In this document: in pieces, positions 4,521-44,499 of the stretch
Layout: each line of letters starts with the position of its first letter
Numbering within the stretch: the stretch's first letter is position 1
Assembly (NCBI GenBank): GCA_904063045.1
Contig: CAJFCJ010000064.1
Location: 1-47,444 of the forward strand
DNA length: 47,444 nucleotides
Direction of reading: 5' to 3'
Source: Dimorphilus gyrociliatus
Lineage: Eukaryota > Animalia > Annelida
Translations under genes and position numbers: made by a program
The notes under the pieces: generated by a model
The model's input: the letters and a program-made list of their open reading frames with translations, nothing else
The model's database searches: none
Told to the model about the DNA's origin: nothing

Positions 4521-4574
4521 AATCAGATATACTTCCTCCTTATATGCTGATGCCAAGATTAGCTGTGATATACC

Positions 4575-4726
4575 CTTAGCTGTACCTAACCTTTTGCATT
4601 ACCCTTAACCCTTAGAGGAGACCCTCCTAAGTACAAATCAGTTGCTCTTCTTCTCCTTTCTAATCATTTCTCAATCCAAGTTTTTGTATTGAAATTTCTC
4701 ATTTATGGACATTTTTTGTCGACCCC
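4575..4726 (-). mobile_element. Truncated MITE with a MULE-3-type terminus
   Basis: Reverse complement begins GGGGTCGACAAAAAATGTCCATAAA and aligns for about 150 bp with 41265-41420. Confidence 0.75.
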
Positions 4727-5130: not shown

Positions 5131-5229
5131 GTAATTTTAATAGCTCTCTCAAGGGTTTTGTAATTTTTGCAAAGTCCTTGACAAATCTTCTGTAATAACC
5201 CCAAAATGATACAAAATGTCACAAAGTAT

Positions 5230-5990
5230 TTCCAAACACAGGTAACCCAGCATCTTTTATTATCTGAATCTTTTCTGGATCAGTTTCCAATAATTTATCA
5301 ACTCACCAAAGTATTCACACAAATAGAACCTTTCAAGTTTGTCCACAAATAGTCTTCACAAAAGTAATTTCGGTAGAAATTAATCAACAAAATGGCAGTA
5401 TTTCGTTTAAAGAATATGTATTGAGTAAATGAGTTTCTAGTTCTAAACAAGTAAGTTTAAACGACCAGTTAATGGTTAAAGAACTGAACTGACAAGCTTG
5501 GGAAAAGCATTTCCCTTTATACATTTTCAAAGCTTGGGTTCAAGTGGTCAAAGGATTACAAAGTTGAAATCTGACAGTCTCATAATTCTCATGTAACAAA
5601 AATATAAAAGACTTGTTATATCACACATATAAAATATAATCCTAAGATTAGGGCCACATGTCAAACATGTGCCACAGCAAACAGACCTTCCTCATCAGCA
5701 TCTGGTGTTTGACATGCATCTTTTCCACATTCTTTGTTTCTTTGTTAATTCCCAAGTAGCCACCATCTATTATGGTCAAAAAGTTTATTTCTTAGGAAAT
5801 AGAGTTCTTTCTAAAGTACTCAAAGCTAGCTCTACAAAAAAAAAGTGTTTCTAAAGTTCCACCATCATAATTGCTACGAAATAAAAGTATTTCTATAGTT
5901 GCATCATTCTAATTTCTATGAAATAGAAATCTTTCTAATGTACCCTTTTATCTAAAGTCTAAGTATTAATATATCACTATATCTAAGTGC
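5230..5990 (+). repeat. Dispersed repeat family R1
   Basis: Colinear direct copy at 38940-39615, inverted copy at 10330-10815, and partial copies near 6420-6490, 26200-26490, 32000-32075 and 36715-36810. Confidence 0.8.
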
Positions 5991-6149
5991 ACAGTCTCTT
6001 ATTCAGATGAATTTCTAGTGATTCCTGAATCATTATCTGAATAGGTTTTACTGCCAACATCTTCTTCAGTTGAGTTTTGATAATTTTAAAAACGTTTTCC
6101 CTACATTCCAACAGTTATTTTCTCCATATTTGCTTGTTTTCCAGGTTTT

Positions 6150-6390
6150 GCTCATTGAGTTACAGCTTGTTGGATAAACTTCTTAACTAGTTCCCTTCTT
6201 CTGATAAAGAATGAAAGGGAAACTTGTTTTCTTGCAAAATTAATAATGGCTCCAGAATTTCATAGGAAGTCACAATCAAATATTATAGCCATATCCAATT
6301 TTTCCATAATGAAAAATTCTTGTTTTATAATTCTTCCAGCAAACTGGATGTTCAATCTAGCTTTTCCTTTAGTCTTTAAAGGTTCTATTT
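6150..6390 (-). pseudogene. Retroviral-type (Ty3/gypsy-like) aspartic protease remnant, C-terminal half
   Basis: Reads GKARLNIQFAGRIIKQEFFIMEKLDMAIIFDCDFL*NSGAIINF, resembling the retropepsin ILGxDFL region. Related to the 44090-44340 remnant (GKAKLNGQFAG). Confidence 0.6.
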
Positions 6391-6499
6391 GTGTGAGTAC
6401 TTTGGTGCATTGATAAATGATTGGAAAGGACAATTACAGTTGTGACGAACCAGAAACTCCTACCATTACAATACAACAAAGTACATATAAGTCATTTTA

Positions 6500-6950
6500 A
6501 AAATTTTAGCAAAAGCAAATCAGAAAGGAAAAGACTTCTAATCTATAATGGCTATACATTCAATGTTAAAATCAAACAAAAAGGTGATAAAACATAGATT
6601 TGTTCAGTTAGTAATAAATCTCAAAAATGAAAAACCTTTCCAAGAAGAAAAAACCACAACCACTCAGCATTGAAAAATGCTGAACAACAAATTGTAAGCA
6701 TAAATGATATTGAGAAGAAATGTGCCAATGATATTAAATCATCTGGAAAAGCAATTGCAGAGGAAATTGTTTCAAATCTTTGGTATGGAAAATTTAGTTT
6801 TCAGAATTCCAATGAAGTAGCCAAATATAACAATAAAAAAACCTACAGAACCTAATGATTCAAAATGATTCAAGTTTTTTAGCTATTATATCATTTGAAT
6901 TTTTGAAGAAAGAATATTATTTTTTGCAACTGAACATCAGTTAAAATACA
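6500..6950 (+). pseudogene. MULE/FLYWCH transposase remnant
   Basis: KILAKANQKGKDFLIYNGYTFNVKIK and DIKSSGKAIAEEI match the FLYWCH region and the following helix of the intact MULE-2 transposase. Several stops. Confidence 0.7.
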
Positions 6951-7026
6951 TATCCCGCAAATGTAACTTTTGAAATATTGATTAGATTCATATTATTGAT
7001 TTGTTAAATGTTAATTATTTAATTGA

Positions 7027-7180
7027 CTAGTGAAATGTAACCTTTAATCCTCTTCTTTTTGCTTCTTCATCATTTAAAGGAATTTTTCCAATACCAATAC
7101 CTCTGCTGTCTCTTTCAACAACTAAATGATGAATTATACATTCATCATTTTTTGTTGTAGATAAAAGTTCCAACATTCCA
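7027..7180 (-). pseudogene. GNAT acetyltransferase-like fragment
   Basis: IHHLVVERDSRGIGIGK resembles acetyl-CoA-binding motif A (V..xRGxGxG), followed by EEAKRRGL. No complete gene could be reconstructed. Confidence 0.45.
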
Positions 7181-7441
7181 GAAGAGAGTACAGCTTTAAA
7201 TACAGACCTAAATGATAACTTTTGCAGAATAATTGCCACATTGACATGGGTAGGAAAATATTTGACAAGTAATTGAATTTGAGATGACAGTGTCAACACA
7301 GATCTGTTCTTCTACAGCCACAAATGATATAGTTTACTGTCTGTAACCCTATGAAACGGTTGATGTATTCTAAAAAGGAAGAATGCCCAATGTAATCATG
7401 TGTGGATCCATATAAGATGTTTAAGCAAGTGATGTTTCATT

Positions 7442-7783
7442 GATAAAAATGAATTTGACTGTGCAATTTGTTTAGACTCTTGGGTTTATAATGACTCCAG
7501 AATGTTGCCTTGTCAAAAGTTCATATAAGGTCATGTAATGTAAATAAAGAACAGAGTAAAGAGATTAGAAAGCTACTGAAAAATTGCTCTAATTTGCAAA
7601 ACAATTGACCTATCAGAAAACAGAGAGATGAAAACTGGAATATTGAACATTTACAAAGCATTACAAAAGTCATCAAGTACTCGAATTACACTTTATTTAA
7701 AGTTATATGATTTCAATGAAGAACAACCTGAAGAGATAAGAAATCTGATAAAACATTGTTCTAATATAAAAATAAGAATTTAA
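7442..7783 (+). pseudogene. Half-RING fused to a QQSSN-family LRR fragment
   Basis: DKNEFDCAICLDSWVYNDSRMLPCQ, then out of frame SCNVNKEQSKEIRKLLKNCSN / TIDLSENREMKTGILNIYKALQKSSS...NEEQPEEIRNLIKHCSNIK. Not in the ORF track. Confidence 0.8.
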
Positions 7784-8277
7784 TATTTGGAAAGACAAAA
7801 ATATCAGTTTCAAGAGCTCTATAAGATTAAAATAGAAGTGTAGAGACTTATTGCCTAAGTAATAGGAGACAAAATAGCATGGATTATGGTTGAAGATTAG
7901 AATGAAAGGTGTATTTATATAATTCCAATGATTGTAATCCATTTCATTTCTACTAACTACTTTCATTGCAACTGCAACTTTTGGTGTTTACTTTGGTTTG
8001 AAGAAAGCAAGGATAAGACATTGTGTAGAAATTTAATATCAATTTTTTCATTTTACTGACTGGTTGTTCCTTATTTTGTAATTAGGAACAGGAAACAAAT
8101 GAACCTTCATTTTCATGCCAAATGTCAAATTTATTTCAAAAAATCAAATTCAAAATTGGGGTTAGGAATAGCACTATTTCTCATCCATGTATACGTTTAT
8201 TAATAGTTTGTTAAATATGTTGGGATCAGGGTTAGGTTTAACTGGTTTCCTTGCAAAAAGAATCCAAACTTTTAATC

Positions 8278-9436
8278 TTATTCCTTGTCATAATCAAATT
8301 CTTCTCCAAGAGAATTTTGTATATCAAATCTTTTATTACTAATTATGATTATTCCACTAGTCGTTTGCTTTATGTGCCATATATTTTCTATCTCCATTTG
8401 GAAATATTCATTAAGCATATATTCAACACTTGTACATTTTTCTTCATTTAAAGAACAGATACCAAAATAAAGATTCTTCAAAGTGTTTGACGACGTTCAA
8501 AGTCCTTTAAGAATATTGATTATTCCATTATCCCAATCCATATTGCCCAATAGATTTACTGTCTCAATTTTAAAGCAATGTTTAAAAAGATCTTCAATGT
8601 TATGACTGTGTTCTTCCTTCATAAAACAAGAATTAAAATTAATATTCTTTAATGTGTTTGATGACATTTGAAGTCCTTCACAAATATGATATAGACACTT
8701 GTTATTAAAAAAACTATAAGATAGATTTATCGTTTCTATTTGATAAAACTTTTTCAATAAATTTCCAATCTCTTCACTATGATTTCTATGTAAACAATTA
8801 TGGCTTAAATTCAAATTCTTTAAAGTACTTGATGACATTTGAAGTCCCCTCATAATACTGAATAGTCCTTGATCCATCATTTGATTTCCACATAAATTTA
8901 TTGATTCTATTTTGGAACAATGCCACAATAGATTTTCAATTTCTACACATTGTTTTACATTTAAATGGCACTTTTTGAGATTAAGACTTTTCAAAGTATT
9001 TGATGACATTTGTAATCCTCTGCAAATAGCATGTAGTCCATAACCCATCCATTTATTATTTGATAGATCTATTGTTTCTATTCCAGAACAATGTTTTAAT
9101 AAATCACCAATCTCTTCACATTGTGCCATTATTAAATTACAATTTCTAAAATTAACATTCTTTAAAGTATTTGATGATATTTTAAGAATTTCACAAATAT
9201 TTGTAAATTCTTTTCTTGGACTTTTTTCATGAAGTCTATATTTCCAAATCAAATAATCCATAAACATTTCTACCACATAGTGAACATAAGACTTGATTGT
9301 AGCCACTTCTTAACTCAATGTCTACACATGCATAACACATTTTATGTTTACAAGAGAGTATATCTGAACTTTTCTCTTTGTAAAATTCCTCACAAATTCC
9401 ACATTGGAATTCAGTTTCACCAAAAAAGTTCATCAT
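8278..9436 (-). pseudogene. RING-LRR gene with a frameshift and a nonsense codon
   Basis: C3HC4 RING (CGIC...CKH.MCYAC...CSLC) from ATG 9436. The LRR array lies in another frame from about 9215. A TGA at 8497-8499 interrupts GL*TSSNTLK, and the same frame continues to 8278. Confidence 0.85.
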
Positions 9437-9689
9437 GGTATCCACTTTAACAATGTATGTAACCAAAACAAACAAAAGTTTTGAAAATTTTCTCTTATAA
9501 CCATTTTTAAGCATAACCACTTTATAACAATCTTATATACTAAAGGTCAAGGTTTTTGGACTGATATTGTGTTTTTGAACATAATTGTTTATTTCCTAAT
9601 TAACTAAAAGTATCTGGATTCTCATGTGATAGAGTTTTCTTAATTGCTTAATTGGCAGACAAGAGTAGAGCTTGAAACAAAAATTAAAG

Positions 9690-9970
9690 TCACCTCTATC
9701 CTTAAATGTATGCGTAAAAAAAATAAAAACTGGTAAAGAAACTGAAATATAGCAAGGAAAGTGTGACTGCACCAAAGGATTTGAAAGAATTAGAAGTAGG
9801 CGTAAGCCTTAGAATCATTCAGGGGGAGCTGAAAAGACAAAATTTCAAATACATAAGAATCAGGCAAAGAACTGATCTCACCTCTAAAGATTGTAAACAG
9901 AGAAAAAACTATTTTCTCAAAATGATTAGTGAATATCCAGACTAGTCTGGAGTTATTTTTTCAGCTTACC
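9690..9970 (+). pseudogene. Tc1/IS630-like transposase remnant
   Basis: TAPKDLKELEVGVSLRIIQGELKRQNFKY...DLTSKDCKQRK...D*SGVIFS matches the second HTH, the linker and the W..VIFSDE approach of Tc1-type proteins. Confidence 0.6.
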
Positions 9971-10329
9971 TCACAGTTTTCTCTATCCTTTAATTGAAGC
10001 CAATTCAAGACACCAGTTTTCATTGAGATTTTAAATACTTATTTTGATATATTCACATTTTGATAATGGAATGAGTAGATTTCTCATGTTCAAGTAAACC
10101 ATAAGCGAATTTCAACACCATATTTCCAGATACACAATCTAATTCTTCTTTGAGAATGTTTTAATTTATATGCTAGAGCACATCATAAACACCTAAAGTT
10201 ATTATTTCCAAGCAGACTTCCTCTTTACGAATAGTAAAACATGCGACATGATAAAATAATGACATACTTTGACCATTTCTGCCTCTAAATGTTTTTCATT
10301 TGCTATACTTTGTTCATTTAGGACAAAAT

Positions 10330-10815
10330 TATCAATATTTGTGTGCACTTAGATATAATGATAGATCAATACTTTGACTTTAGATATAAGGGAATGTTAG
10401 AAATACTTCTATTTCATAGCAATTACAATGGTCCAACTTTAGAAAGACTTTTATTTTGTAGAGTTAGCTTTTAGTACTTTAGAAAGAACTCTATTTCGTA
10501 AGAAACAAACTCTTAACAGATGATGGCTACTTGGGAATTAACAAATGAACAAAGAACATGGAAAAGATGCATGTCAAACACAAGATGCTGATGAGGCAGG
10601 CCTGTTTACTGTGGCAAATGTTTGGCATGTGGCCCTAATCTTAGCATTATATTTTATATGTGTCATATAACAAGTCTTTCTTATTTTTATTACATAAGAA
10701 TTATGAGACCATCAGATTTCAATTTTGTAACCCTTTGGCCAATTGAAGCCAAGCTTTGGGAAATGTATAAAAGGAAATGCATTTCCCCAGCTTGTCAGTT
10801 CAGTTCAGTTCTTTA
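10330..10815 (-). repeat. R1 repeat, inverted copy
   Basis: Reverse complement aligns with 5480-5995 and 39200-39615. Confidence 0.8.
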
Positions 10816-10954
10816 AGTTAAGATTATCCATTCATTAAAATGATTCAAAGGAGTACAACAATAGGGAAAAACAAGACTAAGAAATGCTTTAATTATTTTC
10901 GAAATGTAGAAATTACAACTGAAAAAGGCTTAAAAATAGAATTATACTAATACC

Positions 10955-11006
<52 letters not shown>

Positions 11007-11008
11007 TA
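10955..11008. repeat. (CT)n(CA)n microsatellite
   Basis: Directly visible, about 35 bp upstream of the GPCR ATG at 11043. Confidence 0.95.
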
Positions 11009-11042
11009 CAAACAAAAACAATTCTCTTCTTCTTTAATCATA

Positions 11043-11966
11043 ATGAATTCTTCAAATTCAACAACAGTTTTATCATCTGAAGGTGGAAGTTCACTTGAAT
11101 TTCTTGCAGTAAGGTTATTCTCCTATGCTATTTTACCAACCAGCATTTTGTTTGGGATACCATTAAATATTTTATCCATTTTGATAATTGTTAGAGGAAG
11201 TTTATGGAAGATGACGATATTTCGATGTTTAGCAGGAATTTCAACTGGAGATTTAATCACTTTAATCAGTTACTCATTCAGAGCTATGGCTTTAATTAAA
11301 ATTGAAAATATTTCAATTGGATTGTATAAACTGTTATATTGTCAAATTTCTGCATTCTGCTATATAACATTTATTTAATTCTCATCGTTCAATCTTGTAG
11401 CAGTGACTGTTGACTGATGTATTTGTATTTCATTTCCAACTAAAGCTAAAATATGGTCTACTCTAAACACTTGTAATAGAGTTGTAGCAGGAATAGCAGT
11501 ATTCTCAATTGGAGTAAATATATTCATGCCATTTGTTCAAGATCATACAGTAAGAATTTCATCCTCAAGGATTGAATGTTTGCCTCAAAATCCAGGTGGT
11601 AAATTCCTATACAAGTATCATTTAACCTATATTTCTCTTATGTATTCATACTTTCCTTCAAAGAGATTAACAATATTAAAATTTGATTGTTTCAACAAGC
11701 TTCATTAGTTTAACTTTCCAATAAGTTGCTTCAGTATTTATGCTCGAGTTTTCTCTAAAAATTACAATTCCAATCCAGTTGAACGAACAATTTTTGAAGC
11801 AACATTTATTCTAAATTCTATGAATCACATGATCAACTTTTTTCTGTATTGTTTATGTGGACAAACATTTCAACGGGAAATGTTTAAACTATCATCATGC
11901 ACTAAAGAGTCTAAGCAGAGAGAAAAGACTATTGCTAGCTCTATTTCAACTTTAAGCCTAACATAA
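11043..11966 (+). pseudogene. Class A (rhodopsin-like, peptide/chemoreceptor-type) GPCR pseudogene
   Basis: TM1 ILFGIPLNILSILII and TM2 ISTGDLITL are present. In-frame TAA at 11376-11378, the DRY-like motif reads VD*C, and TM7 reads MNHMINFFLYCLCGQTFQRE. Part of TM5-TM6 appears deleted. Confidence 0.85.
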
Positions 11967-12347
11967 ATTACTCCTTTGCCTGATGATAGTTTGTCCGTGT
12001 AGAGAGCATGTGAAGCTGGAACTGTGTTAAACCGTGCTCTTTGTTTGGTGATTTCAATGCCTGTTTGCTTTGACAAACAGAGAGTACTTTCAAGTTTCAT
12101 TAATGTCTGCTGTTGAACTGCCAATTCTAATGCAAAATAACAGACAGCAAGACAGGCTAGAGTCAATTTCATTTTTACAAAGCAAGACTTTTGGTCTTTA
12201 TGAAAAGAATGAAACTGTTAAAGAGTGAGTTTGAGCATTTATAGCTAAAGATTTTTGGTATATTTAAATGTTCTTGACATGAGTTAAAATTAGCTCTAAT
12301 ACCTAAATAGCAAAACTGGTTTTTTTAAAAAGACATCTATTGATATA

Positions 12348-12920
12348 CAGTACCGCGGTAAGTCACTGTTACACCTCAAAAAAATAATATTTTCTCAATT
12401 TTTTCTCTTTCTGTACTTAAAGAATGAAAATGAAGGATTTTATTATATTTAATAATATTCTTTTTATCATTATAGAAAGAAAATATATGTTTTTCATTTT
12501 AAATCTCGGAAATATCATTACTTTAATGTGATAGGCCTTTTTATGGAAAAGCATAAGCATCAGTTATGTTCAATAAATTATCAAATACCTTGATCATTGA
12601 GTAGTGTCACTTTTAACCAGATTTTAAGGTCATTTATGAGTGTTTGCATGTGTAATCTAACAGTTGACAAATTTAAAATAAAAATGGTGATGCTATCTGA
12701 AGCAACAAGAATTTCTATTTTAAATTGTCTTCAAAGACCTTAAATGTCCATTTGAAAAGTGGCAAAGCTTTTTAAATGTAGTCCAACTACTGTACAAAAT
12801 ATAAAAAATAAATTTAAAGAGCTAAAAACAGTCAAAGAAAAACAAAGAAGTGGTAGACCAAAAAAAAGTGACACCAAAGATGGAAAGCCAAATTACCAGG
12901 GCATCTAAATCAAACCCCAA
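12348..12920 (+). mobile_element. Tc1-like element, 5' part (TIR plus HTH coding region), interrupted by MULE-1
   Basis: TA|CAGTACCGCGGTAAGTCACTG begins a TIR of about 250 bp, homologous to the one at 37266. Degenerate MLSEATRISIL...KVAKLFKCSPTTVQNIKNKF...RSGRPKK, then ASKSNPK after a frameshift. Confidence 0.85.
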
Positions 12921-13121
12921 GAATAGGGGTGAAACCATACCCGAGTGAAACCATACCCATACTGGGTGAAACTGTACCCATAAAAATATTAGGTTTTTTT
13001 AATTTTATTAATACTAAAGAAAAGTATATATAATACTAAGAAAATGATAATAGATTAACACATAACTTTGAAAGATAAAAGAATGGAAAAAGTGAAAAAA
13101 AACATTTAAAAAAAAAGAATA

Positions 13122-15645
13122 TTATGGAGCATAAATATATGATGTTTGAACCAATAATTCATCTGCCAAAAGCCCTCCAAGTCTATAATTTTCCCAAATT
13201 TCAAATATTTTTCTTTCTATCTCAATATACTGCTTTTTTTGGTGCTTGATAATCTTCTTCTCAGACATAAGCTTTTCATAGATAATAACCAAATCAGCTT
13301 CTCTCTTCAGCTCATCAAGCAGCCAATAAAATGATCCTTTAGATGGTACTTTAGTATTCATTCTATTGTGCCATCCTTCCACACTGTTATTAGTCCTTAT
13401 GGATAATCCATATATAGACCAATTCTCTGGTTTCCATATAGAGTTCATAATCCATGTTGCTTCAAAATATTCCAACAAGTCTGCAAATTTTTCTTTTTCT
13501 GTAAGTTGAGATTTCAATCTGTAAAATGTTGGAGCAATGATATGAGCAGGCAGAAAAGGTAAAGCCATCAGCTTTCTCATGTCTCTCCAGTCCTCTCCTT
13601 TCTCCATATACTTTCCAGAGTATCCAAGAGACTTGAAGGATCATAATTGTAAAAACAAACCTTAGAGGTTAAATTAAATGTTTTACCTGTATTTTTCTAT
13701 ATATTGCTTGTGTAAAATGGAATACACATCCATGAATTTGTGATTCTGGGTATATTTTGGATACAGCTCTCCAGACCCATCTCAAAATTAATTGTTATCT
13801 TCTCAGGCTGTGACATGCCAGTCAGGTTTCTGACACTCTGAGGAATGAAACATTCATCTGAAAGTAGTTAAAGAATGAATTTCTCAAAAGGATACCTTAA
13901 ATGCTTTTTTATAACTCTTTCTTTTCTTTGATGTCATAAAAATAAATGCCAATGGCATATGTTTCATTTCACCAGCTTTTTTGACATAGCTGTGTATAGA
14001 TAAGAGCTGATAAAAAGGATCCTTTACCATTTTAAATGTCCCATCAATGAACCAGTGTTTTGACTGACCAAGCAAATTAAGTTGATGGCTGCTACCAAAA
14101 ATAAGAATTCTCTCTTTATTTTCACAGATGTCATCTTTCAAAAAATCATCTGGGATGAAATCTGTATTTAAATAAAAGTCTACTTCTTTTGGTTCACTTG
14201 GCCTTAGTTTTTGCCTTGAAAAATTAGCCACTCTTTTCAAATAATCAACATTTGGCAGAGAATCTGTTTCATTTTTGTGTTTTAAAAGAATTGTTTCTGC
14301 TAATCTTTTCCCACTGAAACTTGTGTCAGTTTTACAAATATCTTTCAAATCTTTTCTGATTCTAATGTCACTGGTTAGGTGGTTATTTTTACCATGAATA
14401 TGTTCTAAACTTCCCTTGATGAATGTTTTTCCTTGCTGGCGAATTCTTGCAGGGCATCTTTGTTTTTTGGTCCTCTTACTGCACACCCAAATGATACTTT
14501 TTGAAGTTTTAGCTTTTACAGTGAATGAAAATCCATCATTTATCAGAATATCTTTTCCCATTTGACTTCCACCTTTAACTATTTGAAAGTTGTCATGGAT
14601 AAGTTCCTGCAAGTGTTCAATATTTCCATTGTTCAATATTCCATTGTCATTCACATTTGCATCAATCACACCTTCATTTGCATCTACAACCACATCTTCA
14701 TTTAAATTTTCATCCATTTCATTTCCATTCATCTGACAGTTATCAAAATTGCCACTGTACTGCTCTTGCTGGCAAAATCTATGCATTTGCAAGTTATAAC
14801 AATACTGGTTCTACTTGAACCTTTAAACAAATGTTTAAATTAAAATGGTTTATTCGCAATAATAATACTTAAGCAAGTAACAATATGAGAGTTCGATAGC
14901 AGAGTAGATAGTTCATAAAAGCAGGTTGCCAAATTACCAAACTGTCTTCTAATGTTGAGGAGTAGATGGATGGTTCCAATGGAGGTTGTTTCCAGATGAT
15001 TTTCCCAGGTCCTTGGGTCCAGATGGAAGCTGCATGCCAAATGAGAATAGTGAGGGTTTATATACTTTGAGGTTTGCCTCTGACATCCAATCATCACTTT
15101 ACAGTTGCCGAAATGTGTAGTTCATATTTATGTTTAGTAATAGGATGTTACAAGGTTCAAGATTTAGGAAGGTTAATTGAATTATAACTTGGCCACACCC
15201 TAGGCAAGTTAATTAAATTATAACTTGGCCAAACCTTTATTGGTAATTAAAGATGAGCCTTCAAGCTGACTAATCAGACTTATGTTTGGCCAATGTTATA
15301 GCATTTTCTTGTGTAGGTTTTAAGATGTACATGTATAAGTTGCATAAAATAATAGAGTTCAAGCAACCAAAGTTGTACATTGTAATTTTCCATCAACATC
15401 ACCAGTTTCTACAATTTGATCTTCTGGTCTCTTCATCTGAAGAAGGAATCTGTTTTTTTCACAATCCAGACAAACTGACACCTTAGAATCTGATTGAAAT
15501 AGCTGAATATTTATAAATGCCATATTGAATATAGAATCATACTTATGACACATTTTTGATGAATAATTTCATTGCAGAGCACACAAGACATTTTCTTCTG
15601 TCTTTCATATACAAAAAGCTTACAATTCTTACATTTGACTGTCAT
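13122..15645 (-). pseudogene. MULE-1 PHD-FLYWCH-DDE transposase pseudogene (spliced)
   Basis: Exon 1 MTVKCKNC...CVLC..IIHQKC, exon 2 VCLDC, FLYWCH, WFIDGTF, GCVFH and RTNNSVEGWH. The second catalytic Asp reads INFE and is followed by a 1-nt frameshift. An LTR-like insert interrupts exon 2. Confidence 0.9.
14785..15350 (-). mobile_element. LTR-like repeat, copy B, inserted in the MULE-1 transposase
   Basis: Shares GGCCAAACA..., CAACTGTAAAGTGATGATTGGAT(A/G)TCAGAGGCAAACCT and CATATTGTTACTTGCTTAAGTATT with 2930-3390. Confidence 0.55.
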
Positions 15646-16133
15646 GTTTTATGAATAATTCTCTATGCCAGACTGAAAATATTAAATGTAATTAGTGAAT
15701 AAATAAAAAATAATATTATTGAACACATCTAGAAAACAAGAATAATATTTTGATTTGAAATGAGTATTGGAAAGGTATACTTACAATTATTCAAAATGGC
15801 TGAAAAATATTTTTCAAATAAATTGGATTTTTTCACAAAATTAAAAAACATGTATTGAAAATATGAATAAAACATTAATCTAGATTACAATGCACATGAA
15901 ATTACCTCTGTTAAATCTAAAATGATAATCTTTGCCCAAATATAATTATCAAAAAAGGCTTGAGTTTCAAATTAAATTCTTTCCAAAGTGAAAGTTAGCT
16001 TCAGTTTCTTCATTTTTAAAATGGCTGTCAGTTTATATTTCAACAGTGTTTCTATTTTTGTAGCTTCCATTATTATAATTCTAAATAGTAACATTAAAAA
16101 AATGTAATATTTTTATGGATACAGTTTCACCCA

Positions 16134-16767
16134 GCAAGGTCTGTAGAGAGAGATCTAGCTTTAGTGTCTAACTGCATGACAGCTTCAGATTATATCAGAA
16201 TTTTGAGCAGTCATGTTGTCCCAAATTATAAGAGAGGGGACATTTTCCAGCAGGATGGGGTTAGCTGTCATAAAGCAGCCGGAACAAAATCATACCTCAT
16301 GAGAAAGCAAGTGGACACACTGGATCCATGGCCAGCAAACAGCCCAGACCTGAACATTTTTGAGTGAATATGGGGCATATGCAAAAAATGATTAATGGCA
16401 GTAAGCCAAGAAACAAGGATGAGCTGTGGGGATGTTCAGAGAGGAATTTTTTAAAATTTTAGAATTGAAAATTCAATTCTTATACAAGACAATAGAAAGA
16501 AGGCTTAGGGCAGTTGTAGAAGCTAAGGGTATGCACACAAAATACTAAAACATTAACACATATAATATCCTGTTAAATAACAGTAAAAATAAGAACAAAA
16601 AAATTACTTTTAATATTCTTTTAGATTAATTTTTGTGAATGTAACAAGTACTTATGCTCCCATTGAAAATAGGCCTACCACATTAAAATATCAAAAATTT
16701 AGAGATTTGAAATTAAAAATGTATATTTTCTCTCTATAATGATAAGAAGAATATCATTAAATATAAT
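16134..16767 (+). mobile_element. Tc1-like element, 3' part (DDE C-terminus, truncated TIR)
   Basis: FQQDGVSCH...WPANSPDLNIFE*IWG. The right TIR stops about 110 bp short, where MULE-2 begins. Confidence 0.9.
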
Positions 16768-16775
16768 AGAATTAT

Positions 16776-19539
16776 GGAGAAAACGTCCACTGGAGAAAAC
16801 GTCCACTGGAGAAAACGTCCACTGATTGGAGAAAACGTCCACTGGTTGGAGAAAACGTCCACTGGAGAAAACGTCCACTATGTGAAGAATATATTAAAAA
16901 ATACTTTTTCAAATTTAAATAATAATTTTTTATTATTGATTTTGAGATATATCCAATACATTCCCATAATGCAATCACTTTTGGTAGCCATTTTGAAATC
17001 CAGACAGGAAACAGTTCTGGAATCTTCTATGTTTTTCATGGAAAGTGAATATTGTGCATATTTCATCTACAATTTTTCAGAATTTTTTGCAGTTTGAAAT
17101 ATATTTCACTATTGAAAACCATCAGACAAAACACAAACTTTAGAATTGATATCAGTAAGTTATAGAATATTGTGTTGAAATGATTTATTTATAAATTAGC
17201 TTTATTTTTATAGCAGCCATTTTGTTTATCATTATTGTTAATTGTTTAATTTTTAAATTTATACAGTTGGTTATTGATAGAGATTCCAAATTGAACATGG
17301 CACCAATTTGTTACATTTGTGAAGAGAGAATATATGGAAGACAAAATCAAGAGAAATGTCAGCTTTGCTGTCATTTATTTAAAATACATAAAAAATGTTT
17401 GGATTATAAAGGTTTGTTTAAGTTTTTTGTCACTATCCTTCCTTACAAATATGTTTTTATATTTTTTCACAGATCAATCATTTTATTGTAACATTTGCTG
17501 TGACATATCAATGAAGAAATGCATTGTTGCACTTCAAAGGCTACCTTCTAGTGCATCTGCTAATGAAGAAATAAGACAAACACCAAATTTTGATACAGCA
17601 AATAATAGAAATGAGCAAACTATTGTTTGTGAAAATCATTGTGGAAATTCAAGTGGAAATGATACAAATGGCAGTATTATGGAATCACACAATGTTTTAG
17701 TTGAAGATCTTCCAGCTCAGCAAAATAATATGATGGAAGTTTCATTTATAGTTTCTCCAAAATCAGATTGTGAGAAAGAAAGTTATTCATTTAAAATCTT
17801 AAAGGGAATGAGCCAGAAAGGAAAAGATTTGCTACTTTTCAACAATTTCTGCTACAATATTAAAGAAAAAAGAAACAAGACAACATTCTGGATATGCAGT
17901 GTTAGGAACAAAAGAAACAAATGTTCAGCAACAGTTAGTCAGCATGGGAACAGTTTTTATCCTGGAAAGTTATCCCATTCTCATGAAAGAGTACCTGATT
18001 TGGAACAAAAAATAATGATTAGGAATGAACTAAAAAATGCTTGTAATAAAGATATCAGTAGTTCAGGAAAACGTTTAGCTGAAGATGTTCTGGTGAAACA
18101 TTGTAGTTCTGGTGAAGTTATTCCATCTCTAGATAATTGTACAAGACTGGCAAACTGGACAAGAAAGAAGTTTAGACCAGCTGAACCTCAAAGTATTCAC
18201 TTCAACTTGGCTAAAACTTTTATTCCTGATGATTTTTTACAAATGGATATACAAATGGAGAATGATAGAATACTAATATTTTCAACTACAAAGCAAATTG
18301 AATTATTATCTAAAGGCAAAATATGGTTTATGGATGGCACATTTAAATGTGTGAAAGACCCTTTTTATCAACTTTTTTCTATTCATGGATTTATAAAAAA
18401 AAATGGAGAAATAAAACAAATTCCAATGGCTTTTGCTTTTATGGGATCTAAGAGAAAGACAGCCTACAAGAAATTATTTAAGGTACAATAATTTTGCATT
18501 TTAAATTGAATAATCTAATTTGTTAAATTAACAGGCAATACAAGATTTAACAAATGGGCATAGCCCCAAAAAAGTTGTTGTAGACTTTGAAAAAGCTATT
18601 TGGAAAGCACTATCATTCACTTATCCTGAAGCAAACATTAAAGGGTGTGTTTTTCACTGGACACAGGCAATATACAGAAAGATTCAAGTAATACTTTAAT
18701 TTAGTATTTGAGGTCTAGATAGAACTGACATATTTATTTCCAGGAATTAGGATTATGTAAGATGTACAAGGAGAAAAAAGCTGAATATAGAATCATGAAG
18801 AAATTAATGGCATTACCATTCCTGCCCTCTGATCTGATAGAACCAACATTTAAGACTATTAAAGAAATAAGTCCTATTGAAATGAAGTCTCTATTGGAGT
18901 ACATTGAGACACAATGGATAAATGGATTTTATAAACCAGAGGTATGGTCTGTTTATGGTGAGGCTATAAGGACAAATAATGATCTTGAAGGATGGCATCA
19001 CAGGCTTAACAAGAATCTTTGCTCTAACACTGCATTCTATTTGCTTTTAGATGAACTGAAAAGAGAAGCTGATCTGATAAAGCTATATAAAAAATTACTG
19101 AGTGAAAAGAAAATTTGTAGACAGCAAAGAAAAGCATATCAGAATATTCAGAGCAAAATATTCAGCTTATGGGAACAATTTGAAATTGCCTCAATTACCT
19201 CCCTGGACTTACTTGATAAAGCTTCTGACATTTATTCACCAGTTTAAAATACCTTTATTCTTTAATGTTGTTACACTGTTGTCAATCATTCTTGTTATAA
19301 TGCTTCTTTTTACTTAATCAATATATTAATATTTAAATATTTGTAATTCTTATTATTCATTTTTTCCTGTCAAATTGCTCTAAAAACTCCATCTATCAAA
19401 TATCTTATATCTTACTTTGAAGTTTTATAGTGGACGTTTTCTCCAGTGGACGTTTTCTCCAAGCAGTGGACGTTTTCTCCAAACAGTGGACGTTTTCTCC
19501 AGTGGACGTTTTCTCCAGTGGACGTTTTCTCCTGTACCC
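16776..19539 (+). mobile_element. MULE-2 element with modular (foldback-type) TIRs
   Basis: Six identical GGAGAAAACGTCCACT units at each end (16776-16879 and 19429-19532) in mirror arrangement. The right terminus reads GGGTACA on the reverse strand; the left end lacks it. Confidence 0.95.
17297..19247 (+). CDS. Intact PHD-FLYWCH-MULE DDE transposase, 4 exons, 593 aa
   Basis: Exons 17297-17411, 17473-18482, 18535-18687 and 18744-19247. Introns are GT-AG, 61/52/56 nt. The 1782 nt splice in frame. Motifs: C4HC3 PHD, FLYWCH, WFMDGTF, VVDFE, GCVFHW and RTNNDLEGWH. Confidence 0.93.
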
Positions 19540-21015: not shown

Positions 21016-21439
21016 TATATTTTTCCAATATTAAGTAATTACAGACATTCTGTTTTGTTCTACAAAGAATAAATAATTTTCAACCTTTCTCTACATTATA
21101 TTTTTGTCATTTTGTTGAAGAACTATTTCTTGTGTTATGTTTTCCTGTTTTTGGTTCCTTTCAAAAGAATAGCATTGTTAAAATACCATCTACAGAAATT
21201 TATTAATGGCACCTGTTTATATATTTTTTTTAAATTATTCACTTTTTCATTTATAGTTTAGAATCTCAAAGAATATTTTGAAATAATTGTGCACAAAAGT
21301 TTAGGAAAAAGTAAAAGCTGCTCTAAGTGGTATTCCTAATAACATAGTTAAAGACAATTGTAGTCTTAATGAAGTTAACAATACTTGTAATATGGAGGAA
21401 AATTTATTGCATGAAAATGAAACTGAAAATAATGAGAAT

Positions 21440-21650
21440 ACTGAAGGATCAAACAAATTTCATATTATTGGTGGAAGTCAAAAAGGGAAAGATATTTTGA
21501 CCAACAATGGCATTGCTTTCAATGTAAAATCTAGAAGTGATAAGAGAACCATCTGGAGATGTTCTGTTAGAAATAAGAATGTTCAGTGTCCATATATTAT
21601 TCAACAAAAAGTAAATATTTTCATAAAGAGTAAACATGAACACAATCCTA
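21440..21650 (+). pseudogene. MULE FLYWCH remnant
   Basis: FHIIGGSQKGKDILTNNGIAFNVKSRSDKRTIWRCSVRNKNVQCPYIIQQ...HEHN. Confidence 0.85.
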
Positions 21651-22355
21651 ACATTGCAGTAATATACTTTAAAAGAACTATTAATAACTCACTATATTTT
21701 AGAAGTGTTCCTCTGCTTTCAGGTGAGTGGAAAAGCCACTTGGCAGATTAAAAAATAGAGCAATTTTTTTACCATTCAAATATCTTTTTCCACTCCTTGT
21801 ATGTTTTTCCCACCCTTGGGACATTTTTTCCCAAAGACAATTTTTCCCATACTCATTTATCCAGAAGAAGTATTGAACACTTTGGACACCCCAGATTGAA
21901 TTGGCCAGTTTACCCAAATTCAAGAAATCACCATAAAAACAATCTACAATGAAGTAAACTTGATAAGATATTTAACTAATGTAACCAAACATGTTTTAAT
22001 AAAGCCTAATTTGACATTTGAAGACGATATTGAAAGAGCGGGGTCGACAGAAAACGTCCATGAAAGAAAACGTCCATAAACTGAAAGAAAACATCCATTA
22101 AAATAAATTTCATTTAAATATAAATATATGTTGAAAAAGTAAACCTTTGGTAAAAGAATATGTTAAACATCTACTTAATAAATGAAATATTCACAAAAAA
22201 AAATCACTTAACTTTTCCTATTAGCTTAATTTTTTAGGAATTATATTTCCTTATGGAGTGAAAGAAAATGTCCATAAAGTGAAAGAAAATGTCCATGAAC
22301 TGAAAGACAACGTCCATACAGTGAAAGAAAATGTCTATAAACTAAAAGTAAATAT

Positions 22356-22622
22356 CAAAAGTCATCAAACATTTTAAAAAGTATTGATTTATCTGCATGT
22401 CATTTAAATGAAAAACAGAGTGAAAAATTTGGAGATTTACTTAAAAGATGCTCTAAAATAGAAACAATAAATTTACACTTAAACAAAGGAATGGGGTATG
22501 AATTTTTAGATATTTGCGAAGGGCTTCAGCAATCATTCAACACTCTAAAGAATCTATATTTAGCTGCATGTAATTTAAATGAAGTACAAAGAAAATTTTT
22601 GGGAAATTTGCTTGAAAATTGA
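22356..22622 (+). pseudogene. 88-codon QQSSN-family LRR fragment inside MULE-3
   Basis: QKSSNILKSIDLSACHLNEKQSEKFGDLLKRCSKIETINLHLNKGMGYEFLDICEGLQQSFNTLKNLYLAACNLNEVQRKFLGNLLEN*, with no internal stop and no 5' start codon. Confidence 0.93.
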
Positions 22623-22709
22623 ACTTTTCCAAAATTGCTAAGATTTCTTTTTCAATTTTGCTTTTCCTATTAGCTTAATTTTTTGATATCAAGGTATTGT
22701 CAATTATTT

Positions 22710-24832
22710 TCAATAATATAATTCTGAGCAAAGCTGCAGAAGCTGGTTTGCATTAATTTCACCTTTTCTAAAATTTTCCCAAATTAAGAAAAGATCTTTT
22801 TGAATTTCACTATAAGTCTTCCTTTGAAGTCTAATTGTCTTTCTCTCATTAAAAGGTTTTTGTACAGATTTATCATGTCTGCTTCCCTCTTTAACTCATC
22901 AATCACTAAATAAAAAGAAACATTTTCTCCAACAATTTTATTGAGCCTTTGATGATAACCTTCCAGATCATTATTTGTCCTTATGCTTTGATCAAAAACA
23001 GACCAAGTCTCTGGAGACCAAAATGTATTTTTTATCCAAGTATTAGACACATAGTCCAACAAATCAGACAGTTTATTTTCTTTTGTCAGTTGATTTTGAA
23101 TTTTAGTGAATTGATTTTCAATCATGCCATGAGGCAAATATGGCAAAGACATAATCATTCTCATGGATTCCCAAGCTCCCTCTTTTTTTCTAAATTCCCT
23201 GCTATAACCGAGTTCCTTAAACAAAACAAATATTAATTGGATTGTTAAAAATTTTAGAAATCAATAAACCTGAATTTTTCTAAATATTGCCTGAGACCAG
23301 TGAAATGAACATCCAGTCAAGACAGCATCAGGCCATATATTTTGTAAAGTTTTCCAAACAGCCTTTTCATAGTCTAAGACTATTTTCTTAGGAGCACAAT
23401 TTTCAGCTAAATCCTTCACAGCCTTAAAAATTTAACATGATTGCTTATTAGTAAGTATATTTATGAAATGTAATTCTTACCTGGAAAAGTAGTTTATATG
23501 CTCTCTTTTTTTTAGAAGACAGAAAAGAAAAAAGCAATGGAACTTGCTTAAGCTGTCCATTTTTTTTCAAAAATACATGAATGGAGTACATTTGAATGAA
23601 AGGTTCATTGGCAATCTTAAAAGTACCATCAAGGTACCAAATTTTCCCCTTTGACAATAGCTCCAATTGATGATTTGTTGCAAAGATAATGATCCTCTCA
23701 TTATTCATATTTATATCCTTTGTTAAAAATTCAGGAGGAATGAATGTCATATTCAGCTCAAAGTTTTTATCATTGGGTACAATAGGCCTGTTCTTCCTTC
23801 TATTCCAATTTCCACTTCTTTACAATTAATTATATTTGGTATGTTTGAAGTACTAGAATACTTGACAAGAACATTTTCAGCAATTCTTTTACCTGAAGAA
23901 TTTATATCACTAGAACAATTGTCTTTGATTTCATTTCTTATACGAATACTGGTTTCTAAATATTTTATTGGTGAATGACAATGAATGTTTGTCCCAATTG
24001 CAAAATTGCTTCCTTTTTGATTGATGCTTGCTTTACATTTTCTTTTTTTGCTTCTGACAGAACAAGTCCATACAGTAGTTGTTTTTGTTTTTAATTTAAT
24101 AGTATATGAAAAACCTTGGTGAAAAAGTAAGTCTTTGCCTTTTTGACTTCCATGTGGCAGAATTTTAAAATGAAAATCATCAGAAGAATTTTCTTTGGCA
24201 GATGTTTCACTTTCAAAAGATTCTTCCTCAATTTTTTCAGATTCTATATATGCATTTTGAATTGTTTCAAAATTTTCAACTTCAATTTCATTATCATATT
24301 CAATATCACTTCCATTAATGATATTTCCTTTGTCAACCTTTGTGTTTATACTTTCATCATTATTGTCATTGCTACTCCATGATATAGATAACCTCAATTC
24401 TTCTGTGAACTCTTCAGTACTCTTTTCTTGTCCTTGATTATTGTCTCCTTTCTCATCAATTTTTAATTTTTCCTCAGTCATGCTGTTATTCTCCTCAATA
24501 TTTTTTTCTGGATATTCAACAATTGCTTCTTCCTTCTCATTAAGTTTTGCAGTAGAATTACTTTTTATTGGTACACTTTCCCTGCATTTTTTTGGTTCAT
24601 CAATTCTCTTTAACATCACAAAACAGGTTTTTTTAGTTATTTTATAACAAATAAAACAGAGTGGTGATGCTGTTGATGAATCTGGAAGAAAAAAAAACAG
24701 TAAATGTTTTTCAAATAGAAGATAGTACAAACCATGCAGACATTTTATATGACAAATATGCAGGCACAATGAGCATTGGCCTTTTATTTGCCTACCAACA
24801 AATTGATCATTGCAAATAGAACACTTATCCAT
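22710..24832 (-). pseudogene. MULE-3 PHD-FLYWCH-DDE transposase with two 1-nt frameshifts
   Basis: Exon 1 is 24733-24832, followed by a 51-nt phase-1 intron. Motifs WYLDGTF, VLDYE, GCSFHW and RTNNDLEGYH. Each frameshift (near 23820 and near 22850) is repaired by one extra base next to an A run. Confidence 0.9.
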
Positions 24833-26199
24833 TATTCAATATTTTTTCTAAAATATTGGAGAAAAAGAAGAGCTAAACTAAAATTAATAAATGAATTTGT
24901 CATATCATTATTATGATTATTTATGTAACAATTAGTATTTTGACAATAATATTGAAAAAAAACTTCATTAATAAATAAAATTGCTAAATTTATGTTAGAT
25001 TGATTATTAATAAAATAATCAATAAGTTTTTAATCACAAAGATTAATAAGAACAAAAAAAACCTCTAAAAATTAAAAATTTCATATTACCTCAAGAGAGT
25101 GAAAATAGAAGAGGAAGTTGATATTTTGTATCTCTTTTCCTGAAGATTTCTTCATCTCTACCAGTTTTTTTAAAGTTTTGTGTTAATTTGTTTTTCAACA
25201 TATATTTATATTTAAATGAAAATTTCTTTATTTTATGTGTTCTTTTGATTCATGGATGTTTTCTTTCAGTTTATGGACGTTTTCTTTCACTTTATGGACG
25301 TTTTCTTTCAGTTTATGGACATTTTCTTTTACTTTATGGACGTTTTCTTTCAGTTCATGGACGTTTTCTTTCATGTACGTTTTCTTTCATGGATGTTTTC
25401 TGTCGCATCCTGAAAGAGCTATATATCAATCCAATTAGGTTTAAAATCACAAATTTGACTTTTTTTAATAAATCTGTTCTTACAACTTTTTTTTGGTAAG
25501 TTGGCTTAATAGAGATTAATGAAGTTTTTCATTTGTACACATTTAGGCAGTTTGTAGGTACTAAACACATAAGCTCGTAACCAGGCTCACAAATTCACAC
25601 AATACACCCAAATTGTTACATTTCATTCATCAATGGAAAGCAATATTGAAAGAGTATTATAGAGTACTCTACACACCTAAAACTACAACATACACTATTT
25701 AAACCAAGTTGTAAAAGTATTTTACAACTTAGATGTTAACCCAAATTATTATACACATCATATTTAATGAATATTAATTATATCTTCCACTATTCTATTT
25801 ATATTTGGAGCTTTTAGATTATTGTCACTTTTCAACAGTATTGTATGCACAATACTATATTGGATGATTAAGTTTAATACTTTTATCCTACCAGTCCTTT
25901 ACACAGAAACATATTATCTTACACAAACAATTATTATTAATAATTTGTTGTATATTAAAACGGCATCAAGTTGACCTTTTCCTATTTTTGTGTTTTGGAA
26001 TCAATCCAACTTCTATTAATAATTGTTACATCTTAGGCAACTTTCTGACCTACTAAAATAGGGAGCAAAAGTTCTCCAAGATAAAGAAAAAGTAACAAAC
26101 ATGGAAGTATATTTGAACTTTCCCTTTATCCAAATTGTTACATTTGTTTGTGTGAATATTTTTATCCGTGAACTGTGAACTATTGGAAAAGTATATAAA

Positions 26200-30082: not shown

Positions 30083-31410
30083 TTAGGTACGAATGAAAAG
30101 TTTCAGTCACTGTGTGTTTTTGTTAGAAATATTTGATGAATGTGGTTAATTTTTGTGTATGTTAAAGCCTAAAGTATATGCTACAAATATTGATAATTTA
30201 ATTTTTCAATAGTCCCCTCCGTTTTCTATACAAGCCTGCCATTTGCTAGGAAGTAGAGTGATGCCATTCCGGTAAAACGAGGTTGGCTTTCTCCTCAGAA
30301 AATCTTTGACATCTGTCTCCAATTCCTCCAAATTGTCATAATGAGATCCTCTGATATGGTCCTTCAATCTCCCAAAAAGATAATAGTCAGAGGGAGCCAA
30401 ATCAGGACTGTAGGCTGGGTGAGGGCATAATGACCACCCTTGATCTCTTATGAAATCTGTTGTATAGAGACTTGTATGCGGTCTTGCATTATCATGCTGT
30501 AGTATCATTTGTTTTCCAGGTCTAATTCTATGCAACCTCTTCCTTAGTCTCTTTAGGGTCTCAACATATTGTATTGAGTTGACTATTTCTCCATACTCCA
30601 TGAATTCAATGTGGACTAAACCAGAATAGTCCCAAAAAACTGAGCACATCAGTTTTTCTGCTGACTTGGCCATTCTAAGCTTCTTGTCAGGTGGAGATGA
30701 TGTGTGTTTATAAGTCAAAGAAGACCATTTAGATTGTGGATCATAGAGGTGTACCCAGGTTTCATCTCCAGTCACAATTTTTTCTAAAAAGTCTCTTCCT
30801 TCTGCCGTGTATCTTTCAAGTAGCTCCATACAATGACTCACCCTCACCTGCTTCTGGTCCAGATTGAGAGCATAAGGAATCCATTTTGCACAGATCTTTC
30901 TGTATCCTAGCTCCTTTATAATTTTCCTTACAGTCTGTTGACAAAATTTCTATTTGTTGGGCAATTGCTCTCTGAGAAATGGTCCAATCTTCTCTGATAA
31001 GCCTGTCAATTTCTTCTCTATTCTGACCTGTTACAGCTGTGCTTGGATGACCAGATCTTGCCAAATCTTTAAAATTTTTTCTTCCTTTTTTTCTGTCAGA
31101 TACCCACCTCCTTATTGAACTTTCACTCAGAGTTTCATCCCCACAAAAGCTTTTTAACCGCTTATAAATTTGTCTTGCAGACACCTTCTCATGCACTAAA
31201 AATGCTATGATTGGTTGTTGATCAGAACGTGTGCACATGACTTGCAGTTGCTCATACCAAAATAAATTTGTAATGCCTCAACAGAATCGAATGAAAGTTT
31301 GCACAGTGAAAGTTTACTAAGTTCCTAAGATTATTGGAAAGTATCAATGATATTAGTTAAGCCGTTTTAAAATTACAGCACAGTGACTGAAACTTTTCAT
31401 TCGTACCTAA
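30083..31410 (-). mobile_element. Full-length mariner (DD34D) element
   Basis: Perfect 32-bp TIR TTAGGTACGAATGAAAAGTTTCAGTCACTGTG with TA on both sides; 1328 bp. Confidence 0.97.
30206..31238 (-). pseudogene. Mariner transposase with one internal frameshift
   Basis: RSGHP, AKWIPYAL (WVPHxL equivalent), TGDETW, HDNARPH and YSPDLAPSDY, with 34 residues between the last two Asp. Frameshift near 30945. Confidence 0.95.
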
Positions 31411-32240: not shown

Positions 32241-33452
32241 TTAGGTTAAATGTATAAAACATTTCCTTTCAGAAAATATTTGTAGTAAATTTCTCAATTT
32301 AATACGTTGTTCTCCATTCAAATCACCACTAGACAATGTAAAACACTTTAATGTATGTGATTTGTGAAGTCCTTCACAAATATTAAAAATCCCACTTCCC
32401 ATCTGATTGTTACAACGTATGTGTACAGTTTTGATTTTAGAACAATTATTAAGCAAATTTCCCAATTTTTCACCACATTCTTCATTCAAATTACATTGAG
32501 AAAAACCAAGATATTTTAAGACATTTGATGATTGTTGAAGTCCCTCACAAATATCAAAAAATCCATTTCCTATCGCATGATTTTGACTTAAACTTAATGT
32601 TTCAATTTTAGAACAATTTTTAAGAAAATTTCCCAATTTTTTACAGCATTCTTCATTCAAATTACATTGATAAAAACTAAGATATTTTAAGACATTAGAA
32701 GATTGTTGAAGTCCCTCACAAATAGCAAAAAATCCATTTCCCATCTCGCTACTTTGTCCTATATCTACTTTTTCAATTTTAGAACAATTTTGAAGCAAAT
32801 TACCAAACTGTGTACTTTGTTCTTCATTCAGATAACAACGAGGCAAGTAAATATCCTTTAATATATTAGAAGATTGTTTAAGCCCTTCACAAATAACAAA
32901 AAACCCATTTCCCATCATTCTATTTCCATCTAAATGTATTGTTTCTATTTTAGAACAATTCTGAAGAGCATTTCCTAACTCAGTGCTTTGCTCTTCATTT
33001 AAAAAACATTCTGTCAAATCAAGATTCTTCAGTACATTTGATGACTGTTGAAGCCCTTTAAAAATTTCGAAAAGTCCTTTTCCCATCTCTACACTATAAC
33101 TTAGATTTAATAGTTCTATTTTAGAACAATTTTTCAATAAATTTCCCAATTTATTACTTTGTTCATCATTCAACTGACAATAAGACAATTCAAGACTTTT
33201 TAATGTGTTGGATGATTGTTGAAGTCCATCACAAATAGCAAAAAATCCATTTTTCATCATTCTATTTCCATGTAAATTTATTGTTTCTATTTTAGAACAA
33301 TTCTGAAGAAAATTTCCAAGACTGGTACTTTGCTCTTCATTTAAACAACATCCTGACAACTCAATAGTCTTTAATATGTTTGCTGATTGGTGAAGTCCTT
33401 TACAAATAGTGAAAAAACCATTTTTTATGTTTTTGTTGATAGCTGTATTCAT
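32241..33452 (-). CDS. LRR-only protein (403 aa), seven tandem 56-aa double repeats of ribonuclease-inhibitor/NLR type
   Basis: Repeating SSNxLKxLxLxxCxLNEEQxxxLGNxLxNCSKIExxxLxxNxxMGNGFFxICEGLQQ, open throughout. It begins in mid-repeat and an in-frame stop lies 6 codons upstream of the ATG. Confidence 0.85.
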   Translation of the reverse strand: MNTAINKNIKNGFFTICKGLHQSANILKTIELSGCCLNEEQSTSLGNFLQNCSKIETINLHGNRMMKNGFFAICDGLQQSSNTLKSLELSYCQLNDEQSNKLGNLLKNCSKIELLNLSYSVEMGKGLFEIFKGLQQSSNVLKNLDLTECFLNEEQSTELGNALQNCSKIETIHLDGNRMMGNGFFVICEGLKQSSNILKDIYLPRCYLNEEQSTQFGNLLQNCSKIEKVDIGQSSEMGNGFFAICEGLQQSSNVLKYLSFYQCNLNEECCKKLGNFLKNCSKIETLSLSQNHAIGNGFFDICEGLQQSSNVLKYLGFSQCNLNEECGEKLGNLLNNCSKIKTVHIRCNNQMGSGIFNICEGLHKSHTLKCFTLSSGDLNGEQRIKLRNLLQIFSERKCFIHLT

Positions 33453-44340: not shown

Positions 44341-44499
44341 AAATTAGAAATCATTTCTTTCTTCTGCTGGAGAAATATATATTAGAGATCTGTTATTTCC
44401 TTCTCAGAGTTGTATTATAGGAAAATAATGGCTTTGCCTTTCATTCCTTGTCAAATTATCAAATCAACAGACATTTTCATGTAGGAAAAATAATTTATG

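Follow-up and report, generated by a model that had tools for sequence, protein, structure and literature searches.

Pack-MULEs of plants are Mutator-like elements (MULEs) in which MULE inverted repeats and a 9-bp target-site duplication (TSD) surround a piece of a host gene that starts and ends within coding sequence; parental-type sequence is present elsewhere, and the elements are by definition non-autonomous (Jiang et al. 2004, via PMC8277862, PMC6446971). In 100 animal genomes, 370 Pack-TIRs were reported, in which sequence not derived from a transposable element (TE) is flanked by sequence of an element with terminal inverted repeats (TIRs), and the number of Pack-MULEs in those reference genomes was 0; Hydra and cnidarians go unmentioned in this survey (Tan et al. 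2021; PMC8277862). The same study argued that Drosophila Ssk-FB4 is a Pack-MULE and put forward microhomology-guided template switching, in gap-filling or FoSTeST models, for animal Pack-TIRs. The consulted part of the genome paper of the annelid Dimorphilus gyrociliatus gives Mariner and MULE as the DNA transposons of the species and makes no mention of capture. Here, we describe a stretch of 47,444 nucleotides (nt) of D. gyrociliatus DNA (contig CAJFCJ010000064.1, assembly GCA_904063045.1; the whole stretch is called the window) with a 3.4-kb MULE at 22040–25410, inside which lies a piece of a leucine-rich repeat (LRR) gene. We consider it probable that this is one TSD-flanked MULE copy that took up the LRR piece as composite filler via template switching.

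The element shares with plant Pack-MULEs the inverted repeats, the 9-bp TSD, a host gene fragment (LRR, 22357–22655) between the MULE termini and fragment ends within coding sequence; a candidate for parental-type sequence elsewhere is the contig described below. It differs in its annelid host, in being a single known copy with a single fragment, and in its transposase; a Pack-MULE in the strict sense has no transposase gene, whereas this copy keeps a full-length gene with two frameshifts. The MULE-type DDE transposase, a TSD in the 8–11 bp range (9 bp) and long terminal inverted repeats are those of the MULE superfamily, and with its non-TE piece between stretches of a TIR element in an animal genome the D. 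gyrociliatus locus fits the Pack-TIR definition of Tan et al. 2021. As in animal Pack-TIRs and Ssk-FB4, the junctions fit template switching; unlike in those, the filler is composite (own repeat units and host LRR) and is flanked by a duplication of 24 nt. A preliminary description of this DNA had considered MULE capture in an animal not to be a described system, which does not hold in view of the animal Pack-TIRs and of Ssk-FB4 (Tan et al. 2021; PMC8277862). That TIR transposons of animals capture genes is already described, though rare, and the D. gyrociliatus case adds an annelid example.

By description rather than by phylogeny, the features of the element resemble those of the Rehavkus group (Repbase; PMC6446971), with which it has in common a 9-bp TSD, occurrence in an annelid, a single open reading frame (ORF) and inverted repeats whose length falls in the 26–400 bp range. 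Rehavkus elements also have a PHD-type finger and, ahead of the 3' inverted repeat, a minisatellite, for both of which the D. gyrociliatus element has candidate counterparts. Its PHD-like finger was seen as a C4HC3 pattern only, and its transposase also has a FLYWCH finger. The block of five units (22253–22356) in the place of the Rehavkus minisatellite uses the unit of the inverted repeats and lies inside the filler bracketed by the 24-nt repeats; it may be filler rather than native.

Contigs (Logan) of four public sequencing runs, X1–X4, were placed on the window. X1 behaves as a DNA run, and its single-copy contigs have a depth of ~100–140, with the proviso that Logan contig depth is not copy number. 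Exact X1 contigs at single-copy depth crossed both outer junctions of the element without a mismatch (21769–22068 and 25381–25559), and the left junction was also crossed by X3. The sequence to the left of 22040 differed in eight X1 contigs and three X3 contigs; the differing flanks in X1 indicate that 22040 is the true end of the element. The perfect 9-bp TSD, TGAAAGAGC, was found at 22031–22039 and 25411–25419 and at no other place in the window on either strand, and the element is a single TSD-flanked unit, as the preliminary description had it. The left terminus is GGGGTCGACAG and the right terminus, reverse-complemented, is GGATGCGACAG. The two inverted repeats, of ~100 and ~220 nt, have the units and the tail in common, and their arms are 85–93% complementary. 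The motif of the 21-nt unit, GAAAACGTCCAT (at most one mismatch), occurs 27 times in the window versus 0–2 times in shuffled sequence, and all sites except one belong either to the internal block of units or to the terminal repeats of two MULEs. The high X1 depth of the subterminal spacer (Table 1) indicates that several copies share it. The letters TGAAAGA are the first seven both of the target site TGAAAGAGC and of the repeat unit TGAAAGAAAAC of the element, which may be chance or target preference.

The LRR piece, antisense to the transposase, sits in the interval from the stop of that gene to the 3' inverted repeat. It forms the last part of a 425-nt filler, composed of 17 nt, five repeat units and the LRR piece, that is enclosed by two copies of a perfect 24-nt direct repeat, CTTTTCCTATTAGCTTAATTTTTT. 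A perfect 24-nt duplication around a filler from at least two templates fits serial template switching. The LRR frame is open over 22341–22619 (93 codons, TGA at 22620–22622) and lacks a 5' start codon. Both ends of the fragment fall in mid-repeat, and its homology extends past the stop, which is made by a 5-nt insertion near 22621, to ~22655. The piece had been introduced as an uninterrupted 88-codon fragment at 22356–22622. The open frame, the mid-repeat ends and the missing start codon stand, but the open frame is 93 codons long and the homology reaches ~22655. Because an open frame of 93 codons has a chance of ~4e-4 in DNA of the same composition, the reading frame suggests that the piece was copied recently from coding sequence. 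No sign of function of the LRR cargo was seen in the data analysed.

The LRR piece is foreign to the element. Its best matches were host LRR proteins, and the window itself holds matching LRR genes at 8.5, 32–33, 34.7–35.3, 39.5–40.9 and 45.6 kb, with at most 59% amino-acid identity (E 1e-27) and at most 73% nucleotide identity. The genes at 32.2 and 34.7 kb, which had been assigned to the same family as the cargo, do belong to it, but with the other LRR genes of the window they are paralogues only and were rejected as the donor. The label "immune-type", which had been given to the module, has the neighbouring NACHT and RING-LRR genes as its only basis. In the flanks of the element, from 9.2 to 32.2 kb, no LRR homology was found. 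A closer relative is present in X1: a single-copy contig of 2990 nt is 97.5% identical to 22355–22516 (162 nt, 4 mismatches), starts exactly at the left breakpoint and holds a tandem LRR array with a neighbouring like repeat. By its sequence, this contig would have the expected look of a parental-type LRR array, covering the LRR piece to 22516 only.

By read depth, most members of the family do not contain the LRR piece. X1 depth was 2500–7100 over the transposase and 260–890 over the insert, compared with ~100–140 for single-copy DNA; the lower depth over the insert indicates that most family copies are without it. A related element at locus L002 (scaffold CAJFCJ010000049.1) has the terminus, eight units, ~190 nt and then the stop, without LRR. 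Minus the insert, the 3' end of the MULE copy would come to 219 nt.

We infer how the piece was taken up from the junctions and from other members of the family; uptake may have come before or after insertion at this site. The MULE at 22040–25410 belongs to a multi-copy Mutator-like family that is transcribed, and this copy went in as a single unit. The 425-nt composite filler would have been gained in its 3' subterminal region, on the inverted-repeat side of the transposase stop, by serial template switching, in gap repair after excision or at stalled replication. Besides the 17 nt, the filler would have received ~100 nt from a MULE repeat array and ~300 nt from an LRR gene elsewhere in the genome, and re-entry of the new strand into the element 24 nt behind its exit point would have produced the perfect direct repeat. 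The LRR cargo would then be a non-functional passenger, antisense to the transposase, in a copy that was disabled by two 1-nt deletions and is presumably still transcribed and spliced.

Filler DNA at the deletion joints of cut-and-paste elements, e.g., Ac/Ds, Mu and P, arises from abortive gap repair. In the MULE family, single-copy X1 contigs represent internally deleted members with 12–28 nt of filler at their joints (22767–25136, 23196–24278 and 23721–24396), indicating that sloppy gap repair acts on the family. The LRR insert is like a larger multi-template filler of this kind; it differs in being far longer and in having a host gene among its templates. MULE fragments were found within ~10 kb of LRR arrays in three of the four loci fetched around other Dimorphilus LRR genes; this proximity may favour template switches, and it also makes it more frequent that the two lie side by side by chance. 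A nested small element was rejected as the source of the insert: inverted termini are missing from the insert, and the TSD of a MULE is shorter than 24 nt. End bypass, in which flanking DNA is transduced, was also rejected, as the LRR piece is on the inner side of both repeat blocks.

Several results weigh against uptake by template switching in this copy. The match to the candidate parent ends at 22516, short of the right breakpoint, and the donor was recovered from neither protein nor locus searches. A word-indexed protein search with the 93-residue LRR piece returned nothing in its length range, and the donor was also missed by an exhaustive HMMER search of cluster representatives, whose top local identity, 58%, did not exceed that of the genes of the window. 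Nine fetched loci (~150 kb in all; six from the D. gyrociliatus assembly and three of overlapping Logan contigs) contained no copy of at least 88% identity and no donor. The 17-nt filler had no match in the window or in ~170 kb of fetched loci, and searches with the 24-mer, the spacer and the loose-end sequences gave no other source. No contigs or reads were seen that bridge the internal junctions at 22235/6, 22356/7 and ~22657–61. X1 contains only 28% of the sampled 31-mers of 22141–22760, and the sole X1 contig at 22478 is the 97.5% paralogue; the missing exact contig could be due to bubble collapse in Logan contigs between sequences that are 97.5% alike. The microhomology at the junction of unit and LRR is at most 2–3 nt, the exact value depending on the donor. 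No insert-free copy with the 24-mer was seen, the nearest being a joint of 22200 to 22696 with unknown letters between its sides.

The preliminary description had the MULE capturing the LRR cassette. A host-type fragment inside a TSD-flanked element stands; the read depth assigns most copies to the form without cargo. The LRR-bearing variant might still be a small mobile lineage that moved with its cargo and was mobilised in trans by intact copies, which we regard as unlikely. The X1 depth of ~260 over 22529–22675, about twice that of single-copy DNA, points this way, although Logan depth is not copy number and LRR paralogues of at least 88% identity add to it. Likewise, four X1 contigs share the LRR tail to 22657 and then continue in a common different sequence, and X2 contigs with the frameshift allele but with four differences in 23658–23733 hint at a near-twin; however, neither a second junction set nor a second TSD was seen, and ~170 kb of LRR- and MULE-rich loci contained no close copy.

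Could the insert be an artefact of assembly or polishing, the real element at this site being without the LRR piece? The low X1 share of exact words (0.28) and the lack of an exact X1 contig at 22478 agree with this, as does a mismatch to the window at 22171 in each of the three X1 contigs there. One contig joins 22200 to 22696, but it also differs at 22171 and is thus probably another copy. Moreover, X2 contigs have the private letters of the window at 22171 and 22195 and cover the insert in patches, and a 425-nt composite insert inside a perfect 24-nt repeat is unlike consensus assembly errors. We consider an artefact quite improbable. It is very improbable that the LRR piece is pre-existing genomic DNA caught between two independent MULE insertions or fragments, a case that the preliminary description had raised. 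The region is an LRR/MULE island, its 47 kb including several LRR genes and no fewer than three MULEs, and the second repeat-unit block adjoins the LRR piece, but a single perfect 9-bp TSD surrounds the outermost ends, the inner unit block has neither a terminal motif nor a TSD of its own, and the LRR lies inside both repeat blocks with flanks that lack LRR homology.

The transposase gene of the copy that probably took up the filler is full-length. Contigs of X2, X3 and X4 skip three intervals (23215–23268, 23422–23479 and 24682–24732), each bounded by GT..AG on the minus strand, indicating that these are RNA contigs and that the gene has three introns. Introns of D. gyrociliatus are short, and those of the MULE are 51–58 nt; together with two 1-nt deletions, they make up the frame breaks of the raw ORF list. 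Once the introns were recognised, the earlier reading of a full-length transposase two 1-nt indels from intact proved right, with one extra base after 22848 and 23811 in most other copies, as did its stop near 22710 on the minus strand. With the introns removed and an X at both deletions, the gene model is open for 653 residues and ends at TGA 22710–22712 (minus strand). The model has a FLYWCH finger (PF04500, E 1e-8, profile match) and the MULE domain PF10551, whose two halves are split by an intron (E 3e-4 and 5e-5, each half alone under the gathering cut-off). The motifs DGTF, DYEKA and NNDLEG are present. A C4HC3 pattern lies at residues 4–45 of the spliced model, as a pattern without a profile match, and is interrupted by an intron in the unspliced ORF.

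Over residues 17–652, the model is colinear, at 43.6% identity, with P0152, a MULE protein annotated in Dimorphilus and recorded as having PF10551 and PF04500. Two proteins of the window had no exact entry on record. Protein searches with pieces of the transposase returned nothing but distant Dimorphilus MULE proteins (36–45% identity); close copies were probably repeat-masked in the annotation. X2 contigs match the MULE copy exactly over 23772–24681, including the frameshift allele at 23811, indicating that this copy, or a very recent twin, is transcribed. The X2 RNA contigs that have this allele and the private letters of 23772–24681 differ at four sites in 23658–23733, and these may come from a near-twin copy or from a contig mixed from two copies. 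X1 also contains joints between the two inverted repeats (22060 to 25390), which suggest that there are short non-autonomous relatives as well.

Table 1. Parts of the D. gyrociliatus MULE and of its filler, in window coordinates
Feature	Position	Strand	Remark
Target-site duplication, left copy, 9 bp, TGAAAGAGC	22031–22039	.	perfect repeat
Left terminal inverted repeat (3' end relative to transposase)	22040–22140	+	terminus GGGGTCGACAG, three 21-nt units, AT-rich tail
Subterminal spacer	22141–22211	+	X1 depth ~1700 vs ~100–140 for single-copy DNA
24-nt direct repeat, copy 1, CTTTTCCTATTAGCTTAATTTTTT	22212–22235	+	perfect
17-nt filler	22236–22252	+	no match in window or fetched loci
Internal block of five 21-nt subterminal units, without terminal motif	22253–22356	+	in register with reverse complement of 25255–25358, 88% identity
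LRR gene fragment, ~300 nt, ~1.75 repeats of a 171-nt (57-residue) unit	22357–22655	+	homology to LRR genes
24-nt direct repeat, copy 2	22661–22684	+	25 nt between it and the transposase stop
Transposase gene (C4HC3 PHD-like finger, FLYWCH finger, MULE DDE core)	22710–24832	-	spliced contigs, profile matches to FLYWCH and MULE domains
Transposase exons	24832–24733, 24681–23480, 23421–23269, 23214–22710	-	
Transposase introns	24732–24682 (51 nt), 23479–23422 (58 nt), 23268–23215 (54 nt)	-	GT..AG, skipped in contigs
Frameshift, 1-nt deletion	22848–22849	-	most other copies with one extra base after 22848
Frameshift, 1-nt deletion	23811–23812	-	most other copies with one extra base after 23811
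5' leader, right inverted repeat to start codon	24833–25190	-	RNA contigs reach 24847
Right terminal inverted repeat (5' end relative to transposase)	25191–25410	-	eight units, AT-rich tail as on left
Target-site duplication, right copy, TGAAAGAGC	25411–25419	.	perfect repeat

The nearest LRR and MULE proteins to those of the window are from D. gyrociliatus, and the G+C content of 29% is that of the loci fetched from the D. gyrociliatus assembly. The window has another MULE, from a sister family, at 16769–19532 (+), with six GGAGAAAACGTCCAC units at each end. Its part at 16769–18348 matches a segment of D. gyrociliatus scaffold CAJFCJ010000049.1 (L002:1–1573) at 99.5% identity, indicating that the sister family moved recently. 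A third MULE transposase was observed at 13122–14792 (-), and further MULE fragments at 4909–5130, 6493–6958 and 44486–44731; MULEs and LRR genes form an island here. To the left of the element is a FLYWCH-only ORF (21392–21751) and to its right, from 25533, an unidentified repeat, both very high-copy at an X1 depth of 6500–18000. Many X1 contigs break at 21854 and 25532. A mariner-type transposase frame in two pieces (30206–31238, -) adjoins the LRR-only gene at 32241–33452.

Two further places combine LRR and MULE sequence. An LRR pseudogene piece with an in-frame stop (45647–45910) is ~110 nt from a 76-nt stretch (46019–46094) that is 79% identical to the MULE 5' leader (25076–25150); the region at 45.6–46.1 kb was rejected as a second Pack-MULE for having no inverted-repeat pair. 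At one of the fetched loci, a mosaic (L008:21887–23615) consists of a FLYWCH fragment, an LRR fragment (L008:22071–22367, minus), a TIR-like block (L008:22880–23027) that is 85% identical to the right repeat of the MULE, and a MULE C-terminal fragment. With neither an inverted-repeat pair nor clean ends, it was not accepted as a second clean capture.

In plants, much shuffling of gene fragments goes back to capture by Mutator elements, a process that has scarcely been seen in animals. The D. gyrociliatus locus provides an anatomically resolved lophotrochozoan case inside an element that retains its transposase gene, and its readable junction signature, a 24-nt duplication around a multi-template filler, is a concrete substrate for the question of how captures arise. 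For now, the case consists of a single dead copy that carries a passenger fragment. The LRR/MULE islands of the small D. gyrociliatus genome also lend themselves to the question of whether receptor repeats are reshuffled by transposons. We think it unlikely, on present evidence, that MULEs of this compact genome repeatedly pick up and move pieces of LRR/NLR receptor genes within TE/LRR islands and thereby shuffle receptor modules. If this were true, transposase transcripts would include antisense LRR sequence, through which the silencing of transposons and the receptor genes could be in cross-talk by small RNAs, and animals would have an equivalent of the Pack-MULEs of plants, with an immune-type gene family as its target.

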